This document shows, one piece after another, positions 5,251-55,292 of a DNA stretch of 64,000 nt (its first letter is position 1; every line of letters begins with the position of its first letter). Below the pieces are notes generated by a model. That model saw only the letters and a program-made list of their open reading frames with translations. It was not told the DNA's origin and searched no databases. Both the position numbers and the translations under genes were made by a program. Source of the stretch: Oopsacas minuta (taxonomy: Eukaryota > Animalia > Porifera). The stretch is taken from contig JAKMXF010000343.1 of the NCBI GenBank assembly GCA_024704765.1, positions 1,079,349 through 1,143,348 of the forward strand. Direction: 5' to 3'.

Positions 5251-6296
5251 ATGGCACAGATGATTCCACTATTTCTCGCAGAAGAAGAACCCTCTTCCTC
5301 AATGGCACGTCAACGAGTTTTCAGGGATCTCAATGATCCCCTAGATTGTTATGATGATATGGAACTTGTTCGACGTTTCCGTTTCTCTAGAGTTTCAATA
5401 TCTAAAATTGCAGAGTTGATAGCTAACTATTTGAATTTCACCGAGCGTTCTTGTGCTGCTTCCCCTCACTTGCAAGTTGGTGTGGCACTTCAATTTTTCG
5501 CTTCTGGAACGTTCCAGATAATTTGTGGAGATGGGATAAACGTAAGCCAAGCTTCTGCCTCTCGTTATATCCGAGATGTTTCTCTGGGTTTGCAAGCTAT
5601 ATACCATCAGTTTGTTAGTTTGCCTGCTGGTCTCAAGAGGGTAGAAGTCAAAAACAAGTTTTATGAAATTGCTCACTTTCTAGGCGTAGTAGGATTAGTT
5701 GACGGAACACACATACGAATCCAAAGACCCTCGGAAAATGAAGCAGATTATATAAATCGGCATTTTTACCACTCAATTAATGTCCAGGCTATTTGCCAAC
5801 CAGATGGAATGTTTAGTGATGTATTGGCATGTTTTCCTGGGTCTGTTCACGATTCACGGATTTGGAAGAATTCAGGTGTTGGGATGCATGTTGAAATACC
5901 TTTTCAATAGGGGAGCATATATTAGGAGATAGCGGTTACATGATGAGGCCATATTTACTCACTCCTTATCGCCAACCAATATCTACTCCCCAATTTAACT
6001 ACAACTATGCACATAAGAGGACAAGGGTTATTGTTGAACAGACATTTGGGCGATGGAAACGAAGATTCCACTGTCTTTATGGAAAGCTCAGGATGAGTCC
6101 AGATAAAGTTTGTTCCATCATAGTTGCTTGTGCAGTATAGCATAACATAGCAATACAGTGGAAACAACCTCTCTTAGAAGATGAAGTCTCCGATGATTCC
6201 TATCCGGATGATGTTCTTGACTTTGAAGAAACTGTTGGGCATTTGGCATCAAAGCATTACAGGGATCAATTTTCTATTCATAATTTCAGCAACTAA
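5251..6296 (+). pseudogene. Harbinger (HARBI1-like) DDE transposase pseudogene
   Basis: Motifs RRFRFSR, LQFFASGTF, GLVDGTHIRI, HSINVQAIC, FPGSVHDSRIW, then LGDSGY and RVIVEQTFGRWKRRF. One 1-bp frameshift near 5893 (GAAATACC) and one nonsense codon TAG at 6138-6140 (VLHNIA context). The natural stop is TAA at 6294-6296. Confidence 0.9.
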
Positions 6297-14710: not shown

Positions 14711-16396
14711 CTATAGATTATATGCAATGTAGATTGGGTCAAGCTGATCAGATAGAAAAGAGTCCTTAAGATGTAGTCTCTGAATTTCTCCCCTAGAATT
14801 GATAGGGATAGTTTTGGGGTCAACTATTACAACAACTCCAGGGATTACATAGTGTTCCTCAACTAGAGCAGTTGTAATACGTGGAACAACAGATAATGGA
14901 TCTTTGTCTTCTGATTCTAATTCAGCAACAACAACTAAAAGATGATCACCCTCAAACACTGCACTAGTAGTGATAAATTTGTGGCAACGGTTGACAGAAT
15001 TTTCCAAGTCCCTCGGGTAATAACGAGCTGAGTCTAAGTTGAGTGATCCCTCAATAGAACCTACTATGAATAAATGGTATACAATCTGCCCCTCTTCTTC
15101 TTCTTCTCCCTTTATTATGAATCCGAGAAATCCTGAACGTGCATATTGCTGAAGAATTGTATCGCTGCCCTGAATGGATGCCTGAAAATGTTCCTTATGA
15201 ATTTCGGCAGAAATGTCATCACCAATACCATCAAATCCTACGGCATTGTGCTCACTAATTACCCATATCTCTCCTAATTCTCCTTCTCCTAGCAGAGTGC
15301 GAGTATTAGAGTTAACTATCACGACAGTTACGCCTGGTAGCAGGCGGCCTGAAGATGAGAGCAAAATAGAATGAGGAACACCCCTTTCAACGACCTTAAT
15401 TTTGTCTAGTTTCAGTGCTCTCGCATCTAGATAAAGTTGAATTGGTGTAGGTTGCTTAAGACCCTGTACACAAATGGCAGAATTAACCCGACATCCAAAA
15501 GATGTTGATATTGCACGAAAACTTAGTCCTAACCGTGCAAATAACACAGAAAAAGGAGAAATTATATTCATTCTTGGTCTTTCTTCCCCTACTACAACCA
15601 AGGATTGTAAGTTTGAAAGATTGATCCCTTTTGATATAAGATTTTGTGTTGCACTACTTAAATCTCGCAAACAAGTTTCAATGACTGAATAAGTGCAATA
15701 GGTTTCGATTGCTTTATGTTGCGAGAGAACAAAGAACCATAAAGAAGGATTCTGTAACAAGTCTGTAGGGTGGATTAGAATGGTATGTTGTCCTGAAAAG
15801 ACACTACTCAAAAGGTATATCATTAATCCAAGACCTGAAGATGGTTCTAAAATGAGAACTGAAGAGTGGTTAGGGTTTAGTTCGCATGTTTGTTGATGTG
15901 AGCGACAGAAATGCAAACAATTTTGGTGACTGACCTTTGTTCCTGTCAATACGCCAGTGTCAGATACAGTGTAATCAATGTATGCAATCAATTCAGATGT
16001 AGGAGGGTGGTACATCTTTTCTAATCTCTTTCGCCCTATATCTTCGATATCCAAAAGAGGGGGCCAAGTTCGTAATTCGAAATATGTCGAAACCTCCTTG
16101 GACCTAAGTTGACGAATAGTGGAGTGAGAAGTAAGAATGGCAACTGACTTAGATCTTTCTAAGATATGTGAGATCGTAGGAACTAGAGAGTTATAATTCT
16201 GGGAGGTAACATTCCTAATCACCACAGGTATAAGGCCAAGAAGAAGTGAGCCATAAAATCCAGCAATGAGATCGAGGCCCGGGGGAAGTAGAAGTGCAAT
16301 AATATTTCCGCTGATAAGCTTTCCCTTCTCTGAAAGGTAAGCTGCAACTCTCTCTGATTTCTTTAAGAGTGATCTTCCTGTATAACTCAAGGAGAC
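14711..16396 (-). CDS. DIP2: DIP2 homolog, terminal coding exon (second AMP-binding/FAAL-like domain to C-terminus)
   Basis: The ORF matches recalled DIP2 motifs: PPGLDLIAGFYG, RTWPPLLD, AYIDYTVSDTGVLTG, EERPR, STSFGCRVN, LGEIWV, IPINSRGE and the diagnostic end DQLDPIYIAYNL*. Acceptor TTCTGCAG|GTC at 16397/16396, phase 0, 562 codons including the stop. Confidence 0.97.
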   Translation of the reverse strand, partial: VSLSYTGRSLLKKSERVAAYLSEKGKLISGNIIALLLPPGLDLIAGFYGSLLLGLIPVVIRNVTSQNYNSLVPTISHILERSKSVAILTSHSTIRQLRSKEVSTYFELRTWPPLLDIEDIGRKRLEKMYHPPTSELIAYIDYTVSDTGVLTGTKVSHQNCLHFCRSHQQTCELNPNHSSVLILEPSSGLGLMIYLLSSVFSGQHTILIHPTDLLQNPSLWFFVLSQHKAIETYCTYSVIETCLRDLSSATQNLISKGINLSNLQSLVVVGEERPRMNIISPFSVLFARLGLSFRAISTSFGCRVNSAICVQGLKQPTPIQLYLDARALKLDKIKVVERGVPHSILLSSSGRLLPGVTVVIVNSNTRTLLGEGELGEIWVISEHNAVGFDGIGDDISAEIHKEHFQASIQGSDTILQQYARSGFLGFIIKGEEEEEGQIVYHLFIVGSIEGSLNLDSARYYPRDLENSVNRCHKFITTSAVFEGDHLLVVVAELESEDKDPLSVVPRITTALVEEHYVIPGVVVIVDPKTIPINSRGEIQRLHLKDSFLSDQLDPIYIAYNL

Positions 16397-39771: not shown

Positions 39772-41391
39772 CTAGAAGATAATGAACTTGACAATAAAAG
39801 AATGATAGTCGAAAAGTTCGCAAAATAAACAAAACTATCCATTCATATTTACATTTTCGGAGGTTGTTTCCCAACCCAAAAGATAAACTCTTGGGATATA
39901 GTGCCTACTCAAATATCCATTGTGTCGGTCACAATTAACCACTTAAGCGATATATTTTGAAGGAATTCATATCAAGCTAACGCGGCAATAAAATGAATCC
40001 AACTTGTATTAAGATATAGGTGATAAGTGAAAATTCCTAGTCTTACAAGTGGACACTCAGTCGTAGAAATGAACACCATTTGTCCATAGCAAGAATGTCT
40101 CAGAAATGTGACAAATTCCATAATAAAAATGTTTCCCATCACTATTGAGTGACCCTTTTTCGGACGACGATATGCTAGCTGGGTCAAAAACACGAATATT
40201 AGATCCCTAACTTGTTATTCGACTCAATTTGGCTAAAATTGTTATGTCCCAATGTACATTCCCAATCCAAAGTTTTCGTACACCTTAAAAGGCCATTGAA
40301 AAAATAGTACAATCCCAAGTAAAATATTTAGTAGTACTGATTTTTATTTATATGAGATATTGTATTTTGATTTCAGATTCCTATTTTGCTAATTAGAAAA
40401 GACCATTGTATAACTATCCACCAAAAATAGCTACATCTAAGATTGATAATTATCAATCATTTGCCATCAAGTACCACTTGTTTCTATCTTATACCATGGT
40501 TGCAAATTGAAAAAGGTGGTACATAGTGACACTTGATGATAAGTTTCAAACAAATCAATATATTGTCTGAAAGTTTCTTGAATAGTGAAATTAACTTTTC
40601 AAGAAACTTTCAGACTATATATTGATTTGTCACGATTCTCAAACCAAAAGTGCCATAATTCATACAATGTGAGTGTTTGTATGAGAGTTTGAAGTTCGTG
40701 CATCGAATTTAGTAAAATAAAATTGAAAAAATAAATGGACGATATAATAAATAAAGATTAGAGCTATGTATTTACTCTATATTCATAAAGGCAACAATAA
40801 ATCTGCATATGAGAAAGTTGAAAATGCGAAATTCGGATTCAGCATACTTGATTACCCCCTAAATTTCTATTGAGAGCAAGTCTCTAAGCATATTTCGAGA
40901 TTTCAACCAGTGTTAAATAGATACCTTATACATGCACAATCAATGAAGTCACAATACGTATGTTTAACAGAGCACCACAGGCGGGATGATTTTGCCTCGG
41001 GGGCTAGAGCTGGCCCACAGGCGGGGATTGCTGACGCCTGATCTAAGAAATCAGATTTGAAATTCTCCGAAAAATGCAATTCAATATAAAAGGAGAGAGC
41101 AATTTTATGATTTTAGAAGTAAATTCTAGTGGGTGGCAAATATGATGAATATATTCAAATTGAATTTAACAGTATTCTAGTATCAATAGTGGGAAAAATA
41201 CAAGCGGAACTCCGGTATTTACCCCTTTTAAAAATTGATTCCCTGAATTTGCCGCTTGCAGTGAATTCTGATAAATTTCTAACAAAATGAAGAATAATTT
41301 TTGGCATATTTCCACCCACATTCACCAAAAATAAGTCTCTATTAATAATTTATAGTGAAATCGGTCTCGGCGGAATTCATCTTGATTTTCT

Positions 41392-44227
41392 CACGGGTCT
41401 CTCAGAAAATCATATTGATCGAAAAAACGAGGTCCTTGAGATTTTTCATGATTCTTGTGTAGAATTTTGCGTAGAATCCGATTCTGTTGCCAAAAAAAAT
41501 ATTTCTCACACAAATTTTTGAGTTATTTTATATTTTTTTGTAAAAAAAAAATTTTTTTAGTTCCCATTTTTATATGTTGTCGGGTTGCTAATTTATCATA
41601 TTAGAATCATCGTTATCACTCATACATTGAATATAATACATCCATCAGTCACATATAGAATAAATTAAGTACTTATATAATTAACGAAATTAATTTCCTT
41701 GACAGCATTTAGTAGGTTTTCGCCGTAATTTTCTAGAGACTCGCTACATTGATAATTTCTCCAAACTTTGATGAATCGAGAATGAGCTGATTCAGCTGCC
41801 TGCTCTGAAACGGCGCCCAATCCCATACCAACTGGAAGGAATTTGGTGATAAATGGGATAACATGTCTGCACACTATATGGACTTTTGTTGAACAATTCA
41901 GCCCAGTTAATTTGAATGCTTCTTCAAATTGAAATATCGCCAGTTTGTAATCACCTTGTATCTTTTGCCCAAAACATGTCCTCACTACCTCTGAAAATCG
42001 CTTTAAAGCAATGCTGGATGAGTTGCTAATTGGAAAACCAATCTGCTCAACCATCAATGTAATTTTCCGCATTGCATTACCTTCAAATGCGCCTCCATGA
42101 TAAGAACTTCGAGATATGTTATTGTGCTTCAGTAATAATTCATGTGTAACTAACTCTTCTTCAGACATTGTAGCCACGATCGCATTGTACAACTTCTGAC
42201 CAACCCCTAACAAAAGATGTAACTCGGGAATATTGAACATCTGCATGTAGTCAACCATCCATACACCAAGAGCCTCCATATCTTCTACACCATCACAGTC
42301 AATCGCATGATTCTTTGAGTCGGAGTTATATTCTTCACACAATTTTTGGTACATCTCTGCATGATGTGCTGATGATCTTGATTTGAATTCGACATGATCC
42401 AATCCACTTTTAGCATCCCATACACACCAAATGCATGGGTAACGTCCAAGCATAATACCCAGACAGAGAGCAGCGGCTTTGAGATCAAAGGTAAAAGATA
42501 CGTTGTACTCATGAATAAACTTTTGAATTTCCGGGGCATTCAGTATTATAGAAAAATTGTAATTATTTTCAGGAGCACTTGATACCCATAAGAAGATTAG
42601 ATTTCGCACAGAATTTTCCAGTTGTAGACACATGACAAGCTTAGTGAACCCACAACCATAATCAAGGCCAAGCTTAAAATTGAAACTGTAAACTGAAGAT
42701 TCTCCGCTAATGTTGTAGACTTTTTCTATCAGTTTGTCGATGTTGCAACAGCGTACGACCCAAGTCTTTCTGATATCAGAGGAATACTTCTCTTTGCTCC
42801 ATTCCAGATCTAATTGGACGCATTCGAATATATCATCACAATATTGTTTCCGTTCGTCGTAATAGTCCTTCATTGATGGACAGGCCACGCCAGCATCCCT
42901 TATTACTTTGGTTACAGCTTTTAGTTGCTTGTTACTCATTGCTCCGCCAGTGCATTTTATCTGTGCGATGTCAGAGAAATCCATTTTGGGCATTTTGTGT
43001 TGAGGTAACTGGTCCAAATTACCAGGAAGCATATGAATTGGATGGCCTCCCGATGGTCTAGGTAACGTTATACGCGAGTCCTCACTTGCACTGCGGAATT
43101 TTCGTAAGATTTCGGAACATACGACAGGTTCAATAGAACGTTTTCGTGCTAAAAAAAATTGGCTATTATTTACCAAAGAAGTTTTTGAGCAAGTATGCGG
43201 AAATCCGGGACTTATTGTGTTTAAACACTTACTACAAAGGTTAAGAACCTTTTTGGGAGAGTTGATCGCAGGACGTCCAGGTTTTTCGTGGAGAATTTGC
43301 AAAGAAGCACGATTTCTAGGTCCAAATCTCGAACTTTCCATGCACATTACACAGGTATTGACTGAACTACACGTATTCAAGCGAGTATTTCGTATAATTG
43401 GCCAATTGAATCGAACAGGAATTTCCCTTGAAGTATCATCATGCATTGATCGATTAACCAAATAGAGCTTGCAAGTATTGCACAAAACATTTGGCCGATT
43501 ATCGTCCATCGGATCGATTGGCTCGAAAAACTTCGAATATTGCTCACCCAAATGAGTAGAAATAAGGCTATTGTTTTTAATAGTTATCTTCCCAACTTTA
43601 ATACAACACCAACGACAAATTTTGTCTTTTGCAGACTCGTGCTTACTCATAAATACCAACAGTAGAAATAGATATCAGAACAATTATGTATCAGAAAAAT
43701 TATATAGAAAATGAGTACAAGCATTCTTTAAATAGTTTTTCTATGCAAACAGATATTCGTTAAACACCTTTAATTACTAATTATCACTGAATGGAAACTA
43801 CTTAAAAGTATTCAAAGGACTCGATTAGGTGATTAATGACGTGCAATCAAACTATTGTTACTATTGTTAAACTATTCGAACCTGATACCATACAGAAAAA
43901 TGAATGACATAATAGAATAGAATAAAACCGAAATACTATTGAAAATTCTAAGTGCATGCAAATGTAATCAACAATGTCTAAGCATATCATAATAATATCT
44001 GATTGCCAATGGTGATGCATCTGCCATCGCTGTCATGATGAGAATCTAAAATATTCAAATTGTAAAAAATTATTTTTTTACAAAAAAATAAATTTATCGA
44101 AAAAATTTGTGTGGGAAATATTTTTTTGACAACAGAATCGGATTCTACGCAAAATTCTACACAAGAATCATGAAAAATCTCAAGGACCTCGTTTTTTCGA
44201 TCAATATGATTTGCTGAGAGACCCGTG
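41392..44227 (-). mobile_element. Chapaev (CMC group) DNA transposon, complete, potentially autonomous
   Basis: TIRs begin CACGGGTCTCTCAG(A/C)AAATCATATTGATCGAAAAAACGAGGTCC. They are near-identical for about 130 bp and imperfect to about 165 bp (41392-41555 vs 44060-44227). Single long ORF inside. No perfect 4-bp TSD (TTCT / AATT). Confidence 0.88.
41665..43659 (-). CDS. Chapaev transposase, 664 aa, uninterrupted
   Basis: N-terminal Chapa-type Zn motif H-x7-CRWC..RPNVLCNTC..W..C..C..C..GRP and a second CSKC-x9-HTC motif. Catalytic core LGLDYGCGF (D), FTFDLK..RYPCIWC (D), IPELHLLLG, YHGGAFEG, TKVHIVCRH, SEQAAESAH (E). Confidence 0.88.
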   Translation of the reverse strand: MVFMSKHESAKDKICRWCCIKVGKITIKNNSLISTHLGEQYSKFFEPIDPMDDNRPNVLCNTCKLYLVNRSMHDDTSREIPVRFNWPIIRNTRLNTCSSVNTCVMCMESSRFGPRNRASLQILHEKPGRPAINSPKKVLNLCSKCLNTISPGFPHTCSKTSLVNNSQFFLARKRSIEPVVCSEILRKFRSASEDSRITLPRPSGGHPIHMLPGNLDQLPQHKMPKMDFSDIAQIKCTGGAMSNKQLKAVTKVIRDAGVACPSMKDYYDERKQYCDDIFECVQLDLEWSKEKYSSDIRKTWVVRCCNIDKLIEKVYNISGESSVYSFNFKLGLDYGCGFTKLVMCLQLENSVRNLIFLWVSSAPENNYNFSIILNAPEIQKFIHEYNVSFTFDLKAAALCLGIMLGRYPCIWCVWDAKSGLDHVEFKSRSSAHHAEMYQKLCEEYNSDSKNHAIDCDGVEDMEALGVWMVDYMQMFNIPELHLLLGVGQKLYNAIVATMSEEELVTHELLLKHNNISRSSYHGGAFEGNAMRKITLMVEQIGFPISNSSSIALKRFSEVVRTCFGQKIQGDYKLAIFQFEEAFKLTGLNCSTKVHIVCRHVIPFITKFLPVGMGLGAVSEQAAESAHSRFIKVWRNYQCSESLENYGENLLNAVKEINFVNYIST

Positions 44228-45194
44228 AATTCTTTGGAAAATAGTAGAGACTTCAGAGACTTCGTCTTGGCATTTTCTATTAACCAAATACAACAAAACA
44301 CTTTCCTATGTATGTAGTATCATGCATATTGTTACTCATATCATAATAACTAATATTCAAATCGGGGGAGAGGGGAATCCCAGGGCCCCCCCTCTGTATG
44401 AAACCCTGCTTTAATAGAAATTCCTACTTCTAAGTTACAAGGTCTGAATTTCAAGAATGAAACTTGTTTAATTTGATAAACCGCAGAACAAAAATTACGA
44501 TCACCAGAATCATGCCAATAAATATCACCATTATAACGAATGCTCTTGTCATTCGGATTATAATTCTGCATTTTGTATTTCTATATTTTAGATATGCTGA
44601 ATCTAATGAGATAATTGAATTAATGATCTTAGATTGCAAAATTTAGTCTATTTCAAAATCTAAGCCCACTATTATAATTCGCGAAGAATGCAATTTAGCT
44701 AAAAGACGCACCTTCAGCTAGTTTTTTCAAATTTCCATTCCAAAAGACCCTCGTTCCAACCTAATTTGATTAATTCATGTAAAACTTTCCATGAATTATG
44801 AATTTTTTAAATAAATTACTCGACTAACTAAATACAACATCACAAAATATATGTATGTAGCACACACGTGAGAAATCCAAATACCGTATTTCCCTGCCTA
44901 TCCCAATAAACTACATAGTGAAATCTAGAGAAAATGAATAGATGGGATAAAAGTATATTTTTATGATTACTAATCATAATATTCAGAATTTGCCGTAAAC
45001 TTGATATTTTAATGTTTTCCAGTGATAATCATATAGTCTAAGGCGGCTGTAAAGATTTGGATCGCTATCTATATAATGTATGGAATATTTTCGATTTAGT
45101 GCCGGAAACTCGGGAATATGCATTGACATCTCATAGCAATAATTTAGGGCATGTTAGTAGCCTTCTCGCTATATATTCTTTTCAAACTTTAGTA

Positions 45195-53938: not shown

Positions 53939-55292
53939 CAGTATGTCCCGAAAGTTTTTTCCTATTAGATAAATACCAATATAATTAGTGTTACGTGTCA
54001 TAGGCGTTTAATTACTTTCCAATATAACCTCCTTTCAAATCTACACATTTTCTCATTCTTGCTGGCATCCCATCTATCAATTTTCGAAGTAAGTCCGGAT
54101 TGATATTAGACCACACTGTTTTGAGGTTTTTGTCCAGCATTTCTAGATTTGTCGCTGATGGCATCTCTGACAAGCTCTGTTTAACAACAGCCCACAAATT
54201 CTCAATCGGAGAAAGATCAGGCGAGTTGCCTGGCCATATTTCTTTCCCCCAACAACCAACAAGATTCAATTGACACCATTCCTGGCTCAATTTCGATGTG
54301 TGAGCGGGGGCTCCATCTTGTTGAAAGATTGATTTTGACATGTTTTCACAAAATCTCCTCTGCAAAACCGTACCTCTCAATCGCCTACGAGCAAAGGCAG
54401 CTTTACATGGCCCAGCTAGTATGTTATCTACATAATATTTTGCATTTACAGTGCATTTCTGAGGAAGAATGTGCAGTTCCGACACAGCATTAGCCGACAT
54501 AGCGGCCCATACCATCAATTTTGGAGGAAATTTCAAAGTCAAGATTGGAGGAATATTTCTAGCACTGGAGTCCCAAACCCGGTCTGTTTGTCTATTTGAA
54601 GGTGCGAAAAGATGAAAGGGAGATTCGTCGGAGAAAATTACATTTGCCCACTCCTTAGATGACCAATTGAGTCTTTTTTTACAGAATGTTAGTCGATGAA
54701 CCAATTTTTTTTCTGTCAATCTCGGATTTCGGGGCCGTTTGAAACATTTGAGACCTAGGCTTTCCTTCAAATAGCGATCTACTGCCGTCTTCGAAGTCTG
54801 ATGGCCACGAGCTGTTAATCTTTCCGCCAATTTTCGGGTTGACTGGTGTCTTTTCCCGATAGATTTAGCAATGACTATTTTGGCCACTCTTGTTACTGAA
54901 GAGGGCCTTCCAGATCTGTGTTTGTCTTCGAGACTTTCACCGCGCTTCTTCCGCTTCCACCAGTTATTGACGGTCTTAATTGACTTCCCGAGGTGTCTAG
55001 CAACATTCTTCTGTGAAATTCCAGCTTCTAACATTGCTATTGCCTTCAAACGTAGGATAATTGTTCTGGGATTCCCAAAATTCGACATCTAATTTCCAGG
55101 ATAAAAAGAAATTTGTAATTACAAAACAATTGGAGAAGAATATAATGCCTTTGGGAAAATGATAAGTTACCCTTCTCTAAATACACATATCAATCATAAT
55201 AATAATGTATATCTTAGTTAGTGAGATTATTTGAACTAAGGGTCTATAATATAATATGTAATGCAATAGGAAAAAACTTTCGGGACGTACTG
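53939..55292 (-). mobile_element. Tc1-like DD37E transposon, complete, potentially active
   Basis: TA|CAGTATGTCCCGAAAGTTTTTTCCTATT ... AATAGGAAAAAACTTTCGGGACGTACTG|TA: 28-bp TIRs with one mismatch and TA TSD; 1354 bp. Confidence 0.95.
54012..55088 (-). CDS. Tc1/mariner transposase, 358 aa, intact, DD37E triad
   Basis: HTH region with RSGRP, IFSDESPF (D), LMVWAAMS, FQQDGAPAH-(37 aa)-SPDLSPIENLW (E); no stops or frameshifts. Confidence 0.95.
   Translation of the reverse strand: MSNFGNPRTIILRLKAIAMLEAGISQKNVARHLGKSIKTVNNWWKRKKRGESLEDKHRSGRPSSVTRVAKIVIAKSIGKRHQSTRKLAERLTARGHQTSKTAVDRYLKESLGLKCFKRPRNPRLTEKKLVHRLTFCKKRLNWSSKEWANVIFSDESPFHLFAPSNRQTDRVWDSSARNIPPILTLKFPPKLMVWAAMSANAVSELHILPQKCTVNAKYYVDNILAGPCKAAFARRRLRGTVLQRRFCENMSKSIFQQDGAPAHTSKLSQEWCQLNLVGCWGKEIWPGNSPDLSPIENLWAVVKQSLSEMPSATNLEMLDKNLKTVWSNINPDLLRKLIDGMPARMRKCVDLKGGYIGK

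Follow-up and report, generated by a model that had tools for sequence, protein, structure and literature searches.

Background

To our knowledge, no transposases other than those of Chapaev consistently carry the zinc module found at the N-terminus of RAG1. The group was reportedly introduced by Kapitonov and Jurka in 2007, and its name presumably covers the Repbase families Chapaev-1/2 from amphioxus, Nematostella and Hydra as well as the class DNA/CMC-Chapaev in RepeatMasker. As published (PMC4079192), the hallmarks of the group are target-site duplications (TSDs) of 3-4 bp, termini that are always CAC/GTG, and a transposase in which a DDE triad is accompanied by three motifs, called C(2)C, LH and H(4)H. 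In this study we describe an element that is very probably an autonomous Chapaev-group DNA transposon of the cut-and-paste kind, very recently amplified in the glass sponge Oopsacas minuta. It was found in a stretch of 64,000 nucleotides, called the window here (contig JAKMXF010000343.1 of the assembly GCA_024704765.1, positions 1,079,349 to 1,143,348 of the forward strand), and positions are counted from the first letter of the window unless another locus is named.

Regarding classification, Chapaev is filed under CMC (CACTA, Mirage, Chapaev) by RepeatMasker and by Yuan and Wessler. Majorek et al. 2014 (PMC3985635) identified the Pfam family DUF1280 as Chapaev transposases and grouped it with RAG1, and in the same work Mirage corresponds to DUF1258 and CACTA to Transposase_21. 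For Kapitonov and Koonin (2015), the Transib superfamily includes Chapaev and Chapaev3 as two of its clades; they also defined the Chapa domain, behind which a RING finger is present in some Chapaev subgroups. According to a 2026 preprint on the N-terminal domain of RAG1, the so-called NZD, the Chapa domain is built of two interdigitated zinc sites, is related to the RAG1 NZD and shows a one-plus-three ('type I') pattern of ligands; neither domain has a solved homologue, and the finger named ZFa resembles a ZAD domain (7POK).

The Chapaev family, its hallmarks, the Chapa domain and the link with RAG1 are already published, and the finding reported here is in itself at the level of annotation. 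What it adds is a very young, intact, intron-less and multi-copy representative from a hexactinellid sponge, with defined ends and a defined TSD. We found no paper in the literature on the biochemistry of Chapaev or on a solved structure, which agrees with the remark in the original prediction, made from the letters of the window, that Chapaev transposition is little characterised biochemically.

Results

A complete element with near-identical copies in the genome

The proposal of a complete and intron-less transposon holds for this locus: two terminal inverted repeats (TIRs) enclose 2,836 bp with one uninterrupted open reading frame (ORF) on the reverse strand (Table 1). The ORF had been given as 664 aa long; it is uninterrupted as claimed, but that length was counted from an upstream TTG (41665..43659), and the ATG gives 661 aa. 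Both ends of the copy begin with CACGGGT, and an inverted-repeat search found arms of 108 nt with 98% complementarity at 41391-41498 and 44121-44228, beyond which a stretch of 79 nt pairs less well. When the TIRs were realigned, 3 mismatches and 1 indel appeared in the first ~128 nt (~97% identity), in accord with the earlier estimate by eye of about 97% over 130 bp. Extended to 170 nt, the alignment has 157 identical columns out of 172, identity over 166 bp is ~92%, and a genome search matches element positions 1-166 with 2673-2836 at 93%. The 2.8-kb element has a single long ORF and no room for a second one of the RAG2 kind.

The O. minuta assembly, 61.5 Mb in 365 contigs, was searched for copies. 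At least 15 full-length copies with 98-100% identity share the same boundaries, and shorter derivatives and solo ends were found besides. The pairwise substitution among 15 full copies is 0.65% on average and 0.11% at minimum, so that the youth first read from the TIRs of one copy is borne out genome-wide. The 661-aa ORF is intact in seven of the 15 copies and nearly full in two more (658 and 676 aa); frameshifts or stops cut it to 230-484 aa in the remaining six. Counted against the majority state among copies, the changes in the ORF amount to 24 synonymous ones, 50 non-synonymous ones and 3 stops, a pattern that comes near to neutral decay of inserted copies and is to be expected of a transposon. 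A protein at NCBI, 99% identical, is named 'hypothetical protein LOD99_14221 [Oopsacas minuta]'. The genome paper of O. minuta gives 15.4% DNA transposons, and its supplements name neither Chapaev nor CMC; they give only a class 'Other (Mirage, P-element, Transib)', with 1.22%.

In addition, deleted derivatives of the element have been mobilised in trans. A rearranged derivative of 1,673 bp, with left-end positions 1-1110 joined to the inverted positions 1-578, is present at two loci, L018 (G000:C326:244692-246364) and L019 (G000:C99:462279-463952), and since the perfect TSDs of the two copies differ (CCGT, TGCC), it was mobilised in trans after its formation. Another locus, L017 (G000:C122:609583-611892), holds a non-autonomous left-left chimera of positions 1-1531 and the inverted positions 1-832.

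Termini and target-site duplications

Nineteen independent copies of the family were inspected at their ends, and all of them have the CACGGGT/ACCCGTG termini. A perfect 4-bp TSD abuts CAC and GTG directly in 12 of the 19, with no visible sequence consensus, where the chance of a 4-bp flank match is ~1/256 per copy. Three more copies match at three of the four bases, and a 5-bp duplication flanks one (L009). The other three, namely the window copy (L001), L004 and L012, have no TSD and are as young as the rest. The original prediction had noticed that the window copy is without a perfect 4-bp TSD (TTCT/AATT) and had asked for a check of the end chemistry; the observation is true for this copy, and the answer comes from the family. 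At that level the end chemistry is CAC/GTG termini with a 4-bp stagger, because a second family of the O. minuta genome also has CACGGGT ends and 4-bp TSDs, the latter in seven of nine copies.

As to the surroundings of the window copy, the element is enclosed by an older interspersed repeat, its flanks 41092-41391 and 44228-44527 matching 13 and 26 other loci, respectively, with 68-87% identity. The TTCT of the left flank recurs 2 nt into the right flank, possibly by chance. Two origins of the TSD-less state of this copy were considered and put aside. With regard to a loss of the TSD by flank deletion, the joined flanks are collinear and of equal length with another copy of the enclosing repeat, so there was no large deletion, an event of 4 bp being beyond resolution at ~70% identity. 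With regard to recombination between copies, the half-sites of L001, L004 and L012 are not reciprocal and lend this origin no support.

The second family, likewise of Chapaev type, has an element length of 2,928 bp, TIRs of 420 bp that are 99% identical, and ~68% nucleotide identity to the window family. Its representative is L029:909-3836 (G000:C56:15353-18280), about 17 more copies are found (L041-L060), and two copies have an intact ORF of 667 aa. The copies are 92-100% identical, and this family is therefore older and more spread out. The ends of both sponge families can be aligned over 80 nt and have in common the heptamer CACGGGT and a block at positions 31-55, which reads A6-(C/T)GAGGTC-N-TTGAGATTTTT. 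The block has the same layout at both ends (window 41392-41446 and 44173-44227; L029:909-965), and its A-run begins 23 nt after the heptamer at either end. As a remark on the letters only, this layout of heptamer, 23 nt and A6 block may superficially recall a 23-RSS, the recombination signal sequence with the longer spacing.

The transposase and its conserved motifs

With a profile of five sequences, 5,544 cluster representatives were retrieved at E<=1e-3, of which 659 reach E<=1e-30; many of the representatives are 650-700 aa long and alignable end to end. The same profile had no match among PDB sequences. The identity of the window protein to most relatives is only 20-26%, and a cluster look-up gave neither names nor taxa for ten of the relatives. 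An alignment of 64 full-length family members (A3) was used for the analysis of conservation, for profile searches and for AlphaFold2. In the N-terminal part, the positions invariant or nearly invariant among the 64 members are H4, C12, C15, C57, C60, C94, C100, C103, C139, C142, H152 and C154; those in the core are D330, E361, D389, K391, C406, C409, L477, H478, G524, H591, H596, E616, E620 and H623, and the motif residues G125-R126-P127 and P405 are conserved as well. Those of the hallmark motifs (C406/C409, L477-H478, H591/H596) and of the putative triad (D330, D389, E620) are invariant or kept in at least 63 of the 64. All zinc clusters, candidate catalytic residues, core motifs and N-terminal motifs that had been pointed out in the single protein are hence present and conserved across the family.

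When the 64-member profile was compared with PDB sequences, RAG1L and RAG1 were its sole matches, with amphioxus RAG1L (6b40_A) at E 4.9e-4, zebrafish RAG1 (3jbw_A) at E 0.014 and a mouse RAG1 chimera at E 0.033. The profile alignment brings six pairs of motifs into register, that is, DLK with DEK, C(2)C with CTLC, LH with LH, GN with GN, H(4)H with H-x4-H, and SEQaaES with SEGNES. We take the counterparts in mouse RAG1, by standard numbering, to be D708, C727/C730, H937/H942 and E962. The nearest named clusters of the ESM Atlas carry RAG1_RNase_H, and no Pfam RAG1 family is matched by any of the 64 members. Eleven of the 64 match DUF1280 in Pfam at E<0.01, the window protein alone giving no match; one relative, P0016, reaches 29.6 bits over residues 209-345 (gathering cut-off 25), and its alignment with the window protein, at E 2e-30, covers the full length. 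Transposase_21 (PF02992) and DUF1258 (PF06869) are absent from the Pfam matches of the 64 members.

E476 of the motif 'PELH' was tried as a replacement for the second catalytic Asp and rejected: the position is variable (E in 52 members, Q in 6, A in 2, others in the rest), and D389 aligns with the Asp of the RAG1 DEK motif. A fourth acidic residue, E361 (42568-42570; motif APENN, directly after the third RNase H strand), is invariant in 64/64 members.

Predicted structure of the catalytic core

The AlphaFold2 model built with A3 has a mean predicted local distance difference test score (pLDDT) of 86.4, and most of the core is above 90. The predicted placement of D330, D389 and E620 is canonical for RNase H, with E620, on the helix 617-630, as the predicted catalytic Glu. 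In a Foldseek search of the PDB, all 49 matches at E<=1e-3 are RAG1, BbRAG1L or HzTransib, and the P element transposase comes next at E 4.6e-3. Structural alignment by VIA-align superposes mouse RAG1 459-1002 on the model residues 220-661 with Z 23.4 and a root-mean-square deviation (rmsd) of 3.6 Å over 413 residues. It is followed by HzTransib (Z 22.8, 3.6 Å, 369 residues) and BbRAG1L (Z 20.8, 3.8 Å, 408 residues), then by the P element (Z 13.8, 5.3 Å, 336 residues) and Hermes (Z 9.2, 5.5 Å, 272 residues). In the model, the entire multi-domain core is RAG1/Transib-like, beyond the RNase H fold alone. The Transib/RAG1-like core that had been proposed from its motifs is thus also found by the model comparison with RAG1, BbRAG1L and HzTransib (Z 20.8-23.4), together with the motifs in register. 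Such a predicted fold speaks for working like those enzymes, not for membership of their family.

The N-terminal zinc modules

A separate model of residues 1-175 has a pLDDT of 82. Foldseek gave no significant match for it, and its best rows were ZAD domains, with Pita (7POK) at a template modelling score of 0.52. Aligned to 48,161 chains, the same model has only 11 of them at Z>=2, and the top six, all covering residues 4-75, are ZAD domains: M1BP (5.2), Grauzone (4.6), CG2712 (4.4), Pita (4.1), ZNF276 (3.0) and Serendipity-d (2.3). Residues 10-75 are accordingly predicted to fold like a ZAD domain, and the Pfam family zf-AD is matched by 6 of the 64 relatives. The model suggests a two-finger module, in which a ZAD-like finger of C12/C15/C57/C60 would be wrapped by a second site of H4/C94/C100/C103. 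Judged against the published description, H4 together with C94, C100 and C103 fits the type I Chapa pattern. Further downstream, pLDDT is low at residues 112-132, and a finger and a helix are modelled with confidence at 136-173. In the N-terminal model, neither Foldseek nor the alignment to 48,161 chains found a fold like the RAG1 nonamer-binding domain behind the GRP motif, and only whole-model alignments with high rmsd extend into this region.

Table 1. Positions in the window of the element, its ends, its gene and the modules and motifs of the transposase
Feature	Position	Strand	Remarks
Whole autonomous element, 2,836 bp, CACGGGT...ACCCGTG termini	41392..44227	gene on (-)	Boundaries identical in at least 15 full-length copies
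Left TIR, 3' side of the gene	41392..41557	(+)	Near-perfect to ~41519, recognisable to ~41557
Right TIR, 5' side of the gene	44062..44227	(-)	
Intron-less transposase ORF, 661 aa + stop	41665..43650	(-)	ATG 43650..43648; stop 41667..41665
N-terminal Chapa-like zinc module, residues 1-110	43321..43650	(-)	Ligands H4, C12, C15, C57, C60, C94, C100, C103
GRP motif (125-127) in a disordered linker, then C-x2-C-x9-H-x-C finger (C139, C142, H152, C154)	43189..43278	(-)	
RAG1/Transib-type catalytic core, residues 220-661	41668..42993	(-)	VIA Z 23.4 to mouse RAG1
D330, predicted first catalytic Asp (GLDYG, strand 324-332)	42661..42663	(-)	Invariant 64/64
D389, predicted second catalytic Asp (DLK, directly after strand 383-386)	42484..42486	(-)	64/64; opposite RAG1 DEK Asp
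C406-x2-C409, C(2)C zinc motif	42424..42435	(-)	Opposite RAG1 CTLC motif
H591-x4-H596, H(4)H zinc motif	41863..41880	(-)	Opposite RAG1 H-x4-H motif
E616 and E620 (SEQAAES)	41791..41805	(-)	Both 64/64; E620 opposite second Glu of RAG1 SEGNES

Discussion

Assignment to Chapaev and its alternatives

The assignment to Chapaev, as first proposed, agrees with the published hallmarks. CAC...GTG terminal inverted repeats are present in the window family and in the second family, the TSD of 4 bp lies within the range of 3-4 bp at the family level (12/19 copies, and 7/9 in the second family), and the transposase has a putative DDE triad as well as all three motifs, C(2)C, LH and H(4)H. Chapaev3 is excluded because its TSD is a 3-bp TWA and that of the window family has 4 bp, and CACTA/EnSpm and Mirage disagree with the CACGGG termini, with the 4-bp TSD and with the lack of any PF02992 or PF06869 match among the 64 members. 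Several points nevertheless weigh against the placement in Chapaev. As a single query, the window protein finds no match in Pfam, NCBIfam or the PDB sequences, and the placement rests on the hallmarks and on a transitive link through DUF1280. The fold ranking holds among solved structures, and to be closest to RAG1/Transib may partly mirror what is solved; we know of no solved structure of a CMC transposase. Moreover, the window copy itself, with TTCT on its left and AATT on its right (flanking letters at 41388-41391 and within 44228-44233), has no TSD, and its joined flanks, collinear and equal in length with a 70%-identical copy of the surrounding repeat, contain no extra 4 bp. The missing Pfam match also leads to the thought of a separate lineage in the wider CMC/Transib assemblage, a new subgroup with Chapaev hallmarks but outside curated Chapaev or Chapaev3, as the window protein has no DUF1280 match, only 11/64 relatives have one, and identity to most relatives is just 20-26%. 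We regard this as improbable, since the diagnostic motifs, the termini and the length of the TSD all agree with Chapaev proper as published, the predicted N-terminal zinc module fits that description too, and a 4-bp non-TWA TSD fits Chapaev, unlike Chapaev3. A Transib or RAG1-like (TransibSU/RAGL) transposon is what the best fold matches (RAG1, HzTransib, BbRAG1L), the sole PDB sequence matches of the profile (RAG1L and RAG1) and the RAG1_RNase_H of the nearest named ESM-Atlas clusters would suggest, yet it is very improbable. The TSD has 4 bp and not the canonical 5 bp (seen in one of 19 copies), 0/64 members match the Pfam RAG1 families, the profile match to RAG1L/RAG1 is marginal (E 4.9e-4 to 0.03), and 2.8 kb leave no room for a RAG2-like gene. 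Identity to RAG1 is 12-14%, compared with >30% for TransibSU (Kapitonov and Koonin 2015), and canonical Transibs have no NZD/Chapa-like N-terminus (2026 NZD preprint). Canonical Transib and RAG-like elements are thus excluded because of the 4-bp TSD, the lack of a RAG1 Pfam match and of a second gene, and the presence of a Chapa-like module. The RAG1-type fold of a Chapaev protein fits the filing under CMC and that under the Transib superfamily alike.

What state this Chapaev family is in is a further question. Being multi-copy, near-identical and flanked by TSDs, it is therefore a transposon and not a domesticated gene. That a single-copy host gene was derived here from a transposase has next to no chance: the intact ORF would suit it, nothing further does, and it is refuted by copy number and TSDs, with at least 15 full copies that have TIRs and TSDs at unrelated loci and decay neutrally. 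A real though minor possibility is that the family is a just-extinct relic, in which copies look intact only through youth and nothing transposes today. Such an end would be in keeping with the near-neutral substitutions among copies and with 6/15 copies already frameshifted or stopped (ORF 230-484 aa), whereas seven intact ORFs persist, the closest copies differ by just 0.11%, and the rearranged derivative moved after it had formed. The wording 'plausibly active' of the original prediction is what we too infer from youth and intactness. That the element is active at present is rather doubtful. If it were so, this could become the first reconstituted Chapaev, one from an animal lineage that branched early, and would combine an NZD-like Chapa module with a full RAG1-type core. 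It could then serve in experiments as a model of the ancestral state of RAG1, with NZD and core together, and might reveal a second, TSD-less route of insertion, in view of the 3/19 copies without a duplication.

A possible transposition mechanism and its meaning

The transposase of this Chapaev element would consist of four parts, namely a Chapa-like zinc module, a disordered GRP linker, a C2HC finger with a helical region, and a core of ~440 aa, and the N-terminal modules may take part in DNA binding. The core would carry the presumed catalytic triad of D330, D389 and E620 and the zinc site of C(2)C...H(4)H. By analogy with HzTransib and RAG1, a transposase dimer may bind the 166-bp ends at their conserved subterminal blocks and nick at the border between flank and CAC; the freed 3'-OH would then make hairpins on the flanking DNA, releasing blunt transposon ends. 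Integration of the blunt-ended element would follow with a stagger of 4 bp, compared with 5 bp for Transib and RAG.

The compact single-exon family, with seven intact copies, 166-bp ends and a 4-bp TSD, is a practical start for a first study of Chapaev biochemistry. The questions that can be addressed with it are whether Chapaev forms hairpins by the same chemistry as RAG and Transib, what the function of the Chapa/NZD module is, and what sets a stagger of 4 bp rather than 5 bp. It also places a protein with Chapa-like module and RAG1-type core in a glass sponge.

Other features of the window

Three further reading frames of the window deserve mention. A 358-aa ORF at 54015-55088 (-) has the domains HTH_29, HTH_Tnp_Tc3_2 and DDE_3 and is a transposase of the Tc1/mariner type, and a 219-aa ORF at 5251-5907 (+) has the start of a DDE_Tnp_4 domain and is a fragment of a PIF/Harbinger-type transposase. 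At 14714-16390 (-), an open frame of 559 aa with AMP-binding and DIP2-like AMP domains is probably a large exon of a host gene like that of Disco-interacting protein 2.

Comparison with known systems

With Chapaev, the window element shares the CAC...GTG termini, the 4-bp TSD and a single transposase with DDE and the motifs C(2)C, LH and H(4)H, and its relatives match DUF1280. Compared by published description, the predicted N-terminal zinc module, with a ZAD-like first finger and a second site of type I pattern, would be of the Chapa type as well. It differs in its host, a hexactinellid sponge, and in its intron-less gene; in addition, some Chapaev subgroups have a RING after the Chapa module, whereas the window protein has the GRP linker and a C2HC finger instead. 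Chapaev3 (Garfield, Merrow, Conan; PMC4079192) agrees in its motif set and its CAC/GTG termini and carries a Chapa domain, but its duplications are 3-bp TWA sequences between A and T (PMC4079192), in contrast to the 4-bp ones without visible consensus of the window family.

HzTransib (PDB 6PQN, 6PQX) shares the CAC-initiated ends and, over ~370 residues, the core fold, in which zinc-binding and helical domains are inserted into the RNase H domain. Unlike the window element, however, Transib has a TSD of 5 bp and no Chapa/NZD-like N-terminus, and identity between the two proteins is 12-14%.

As for RAG, the spacing from D to D is shorter in the window protein, 58 residues against 107 in RAG1, the latter presumed from standard numbering. 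Unlike RAG1 and amphioxus RAG1L, the window element has no RAG2-like partner and no RING, gives no fold match with the nonamer-binding domain, and has a TSD of 4 bp; both of its ends share one layout, without the 12/23 asymmetry of RAG. The predicted model of residues 220-661 superposes on RAG1 459-1002 (Z 23.4; structures compared, PDB 6XNY and 6B40), the motifs align in register, and by published description the zinc module at the N-terminus would be of the NZD/Chapa kind that RAG1 has too.

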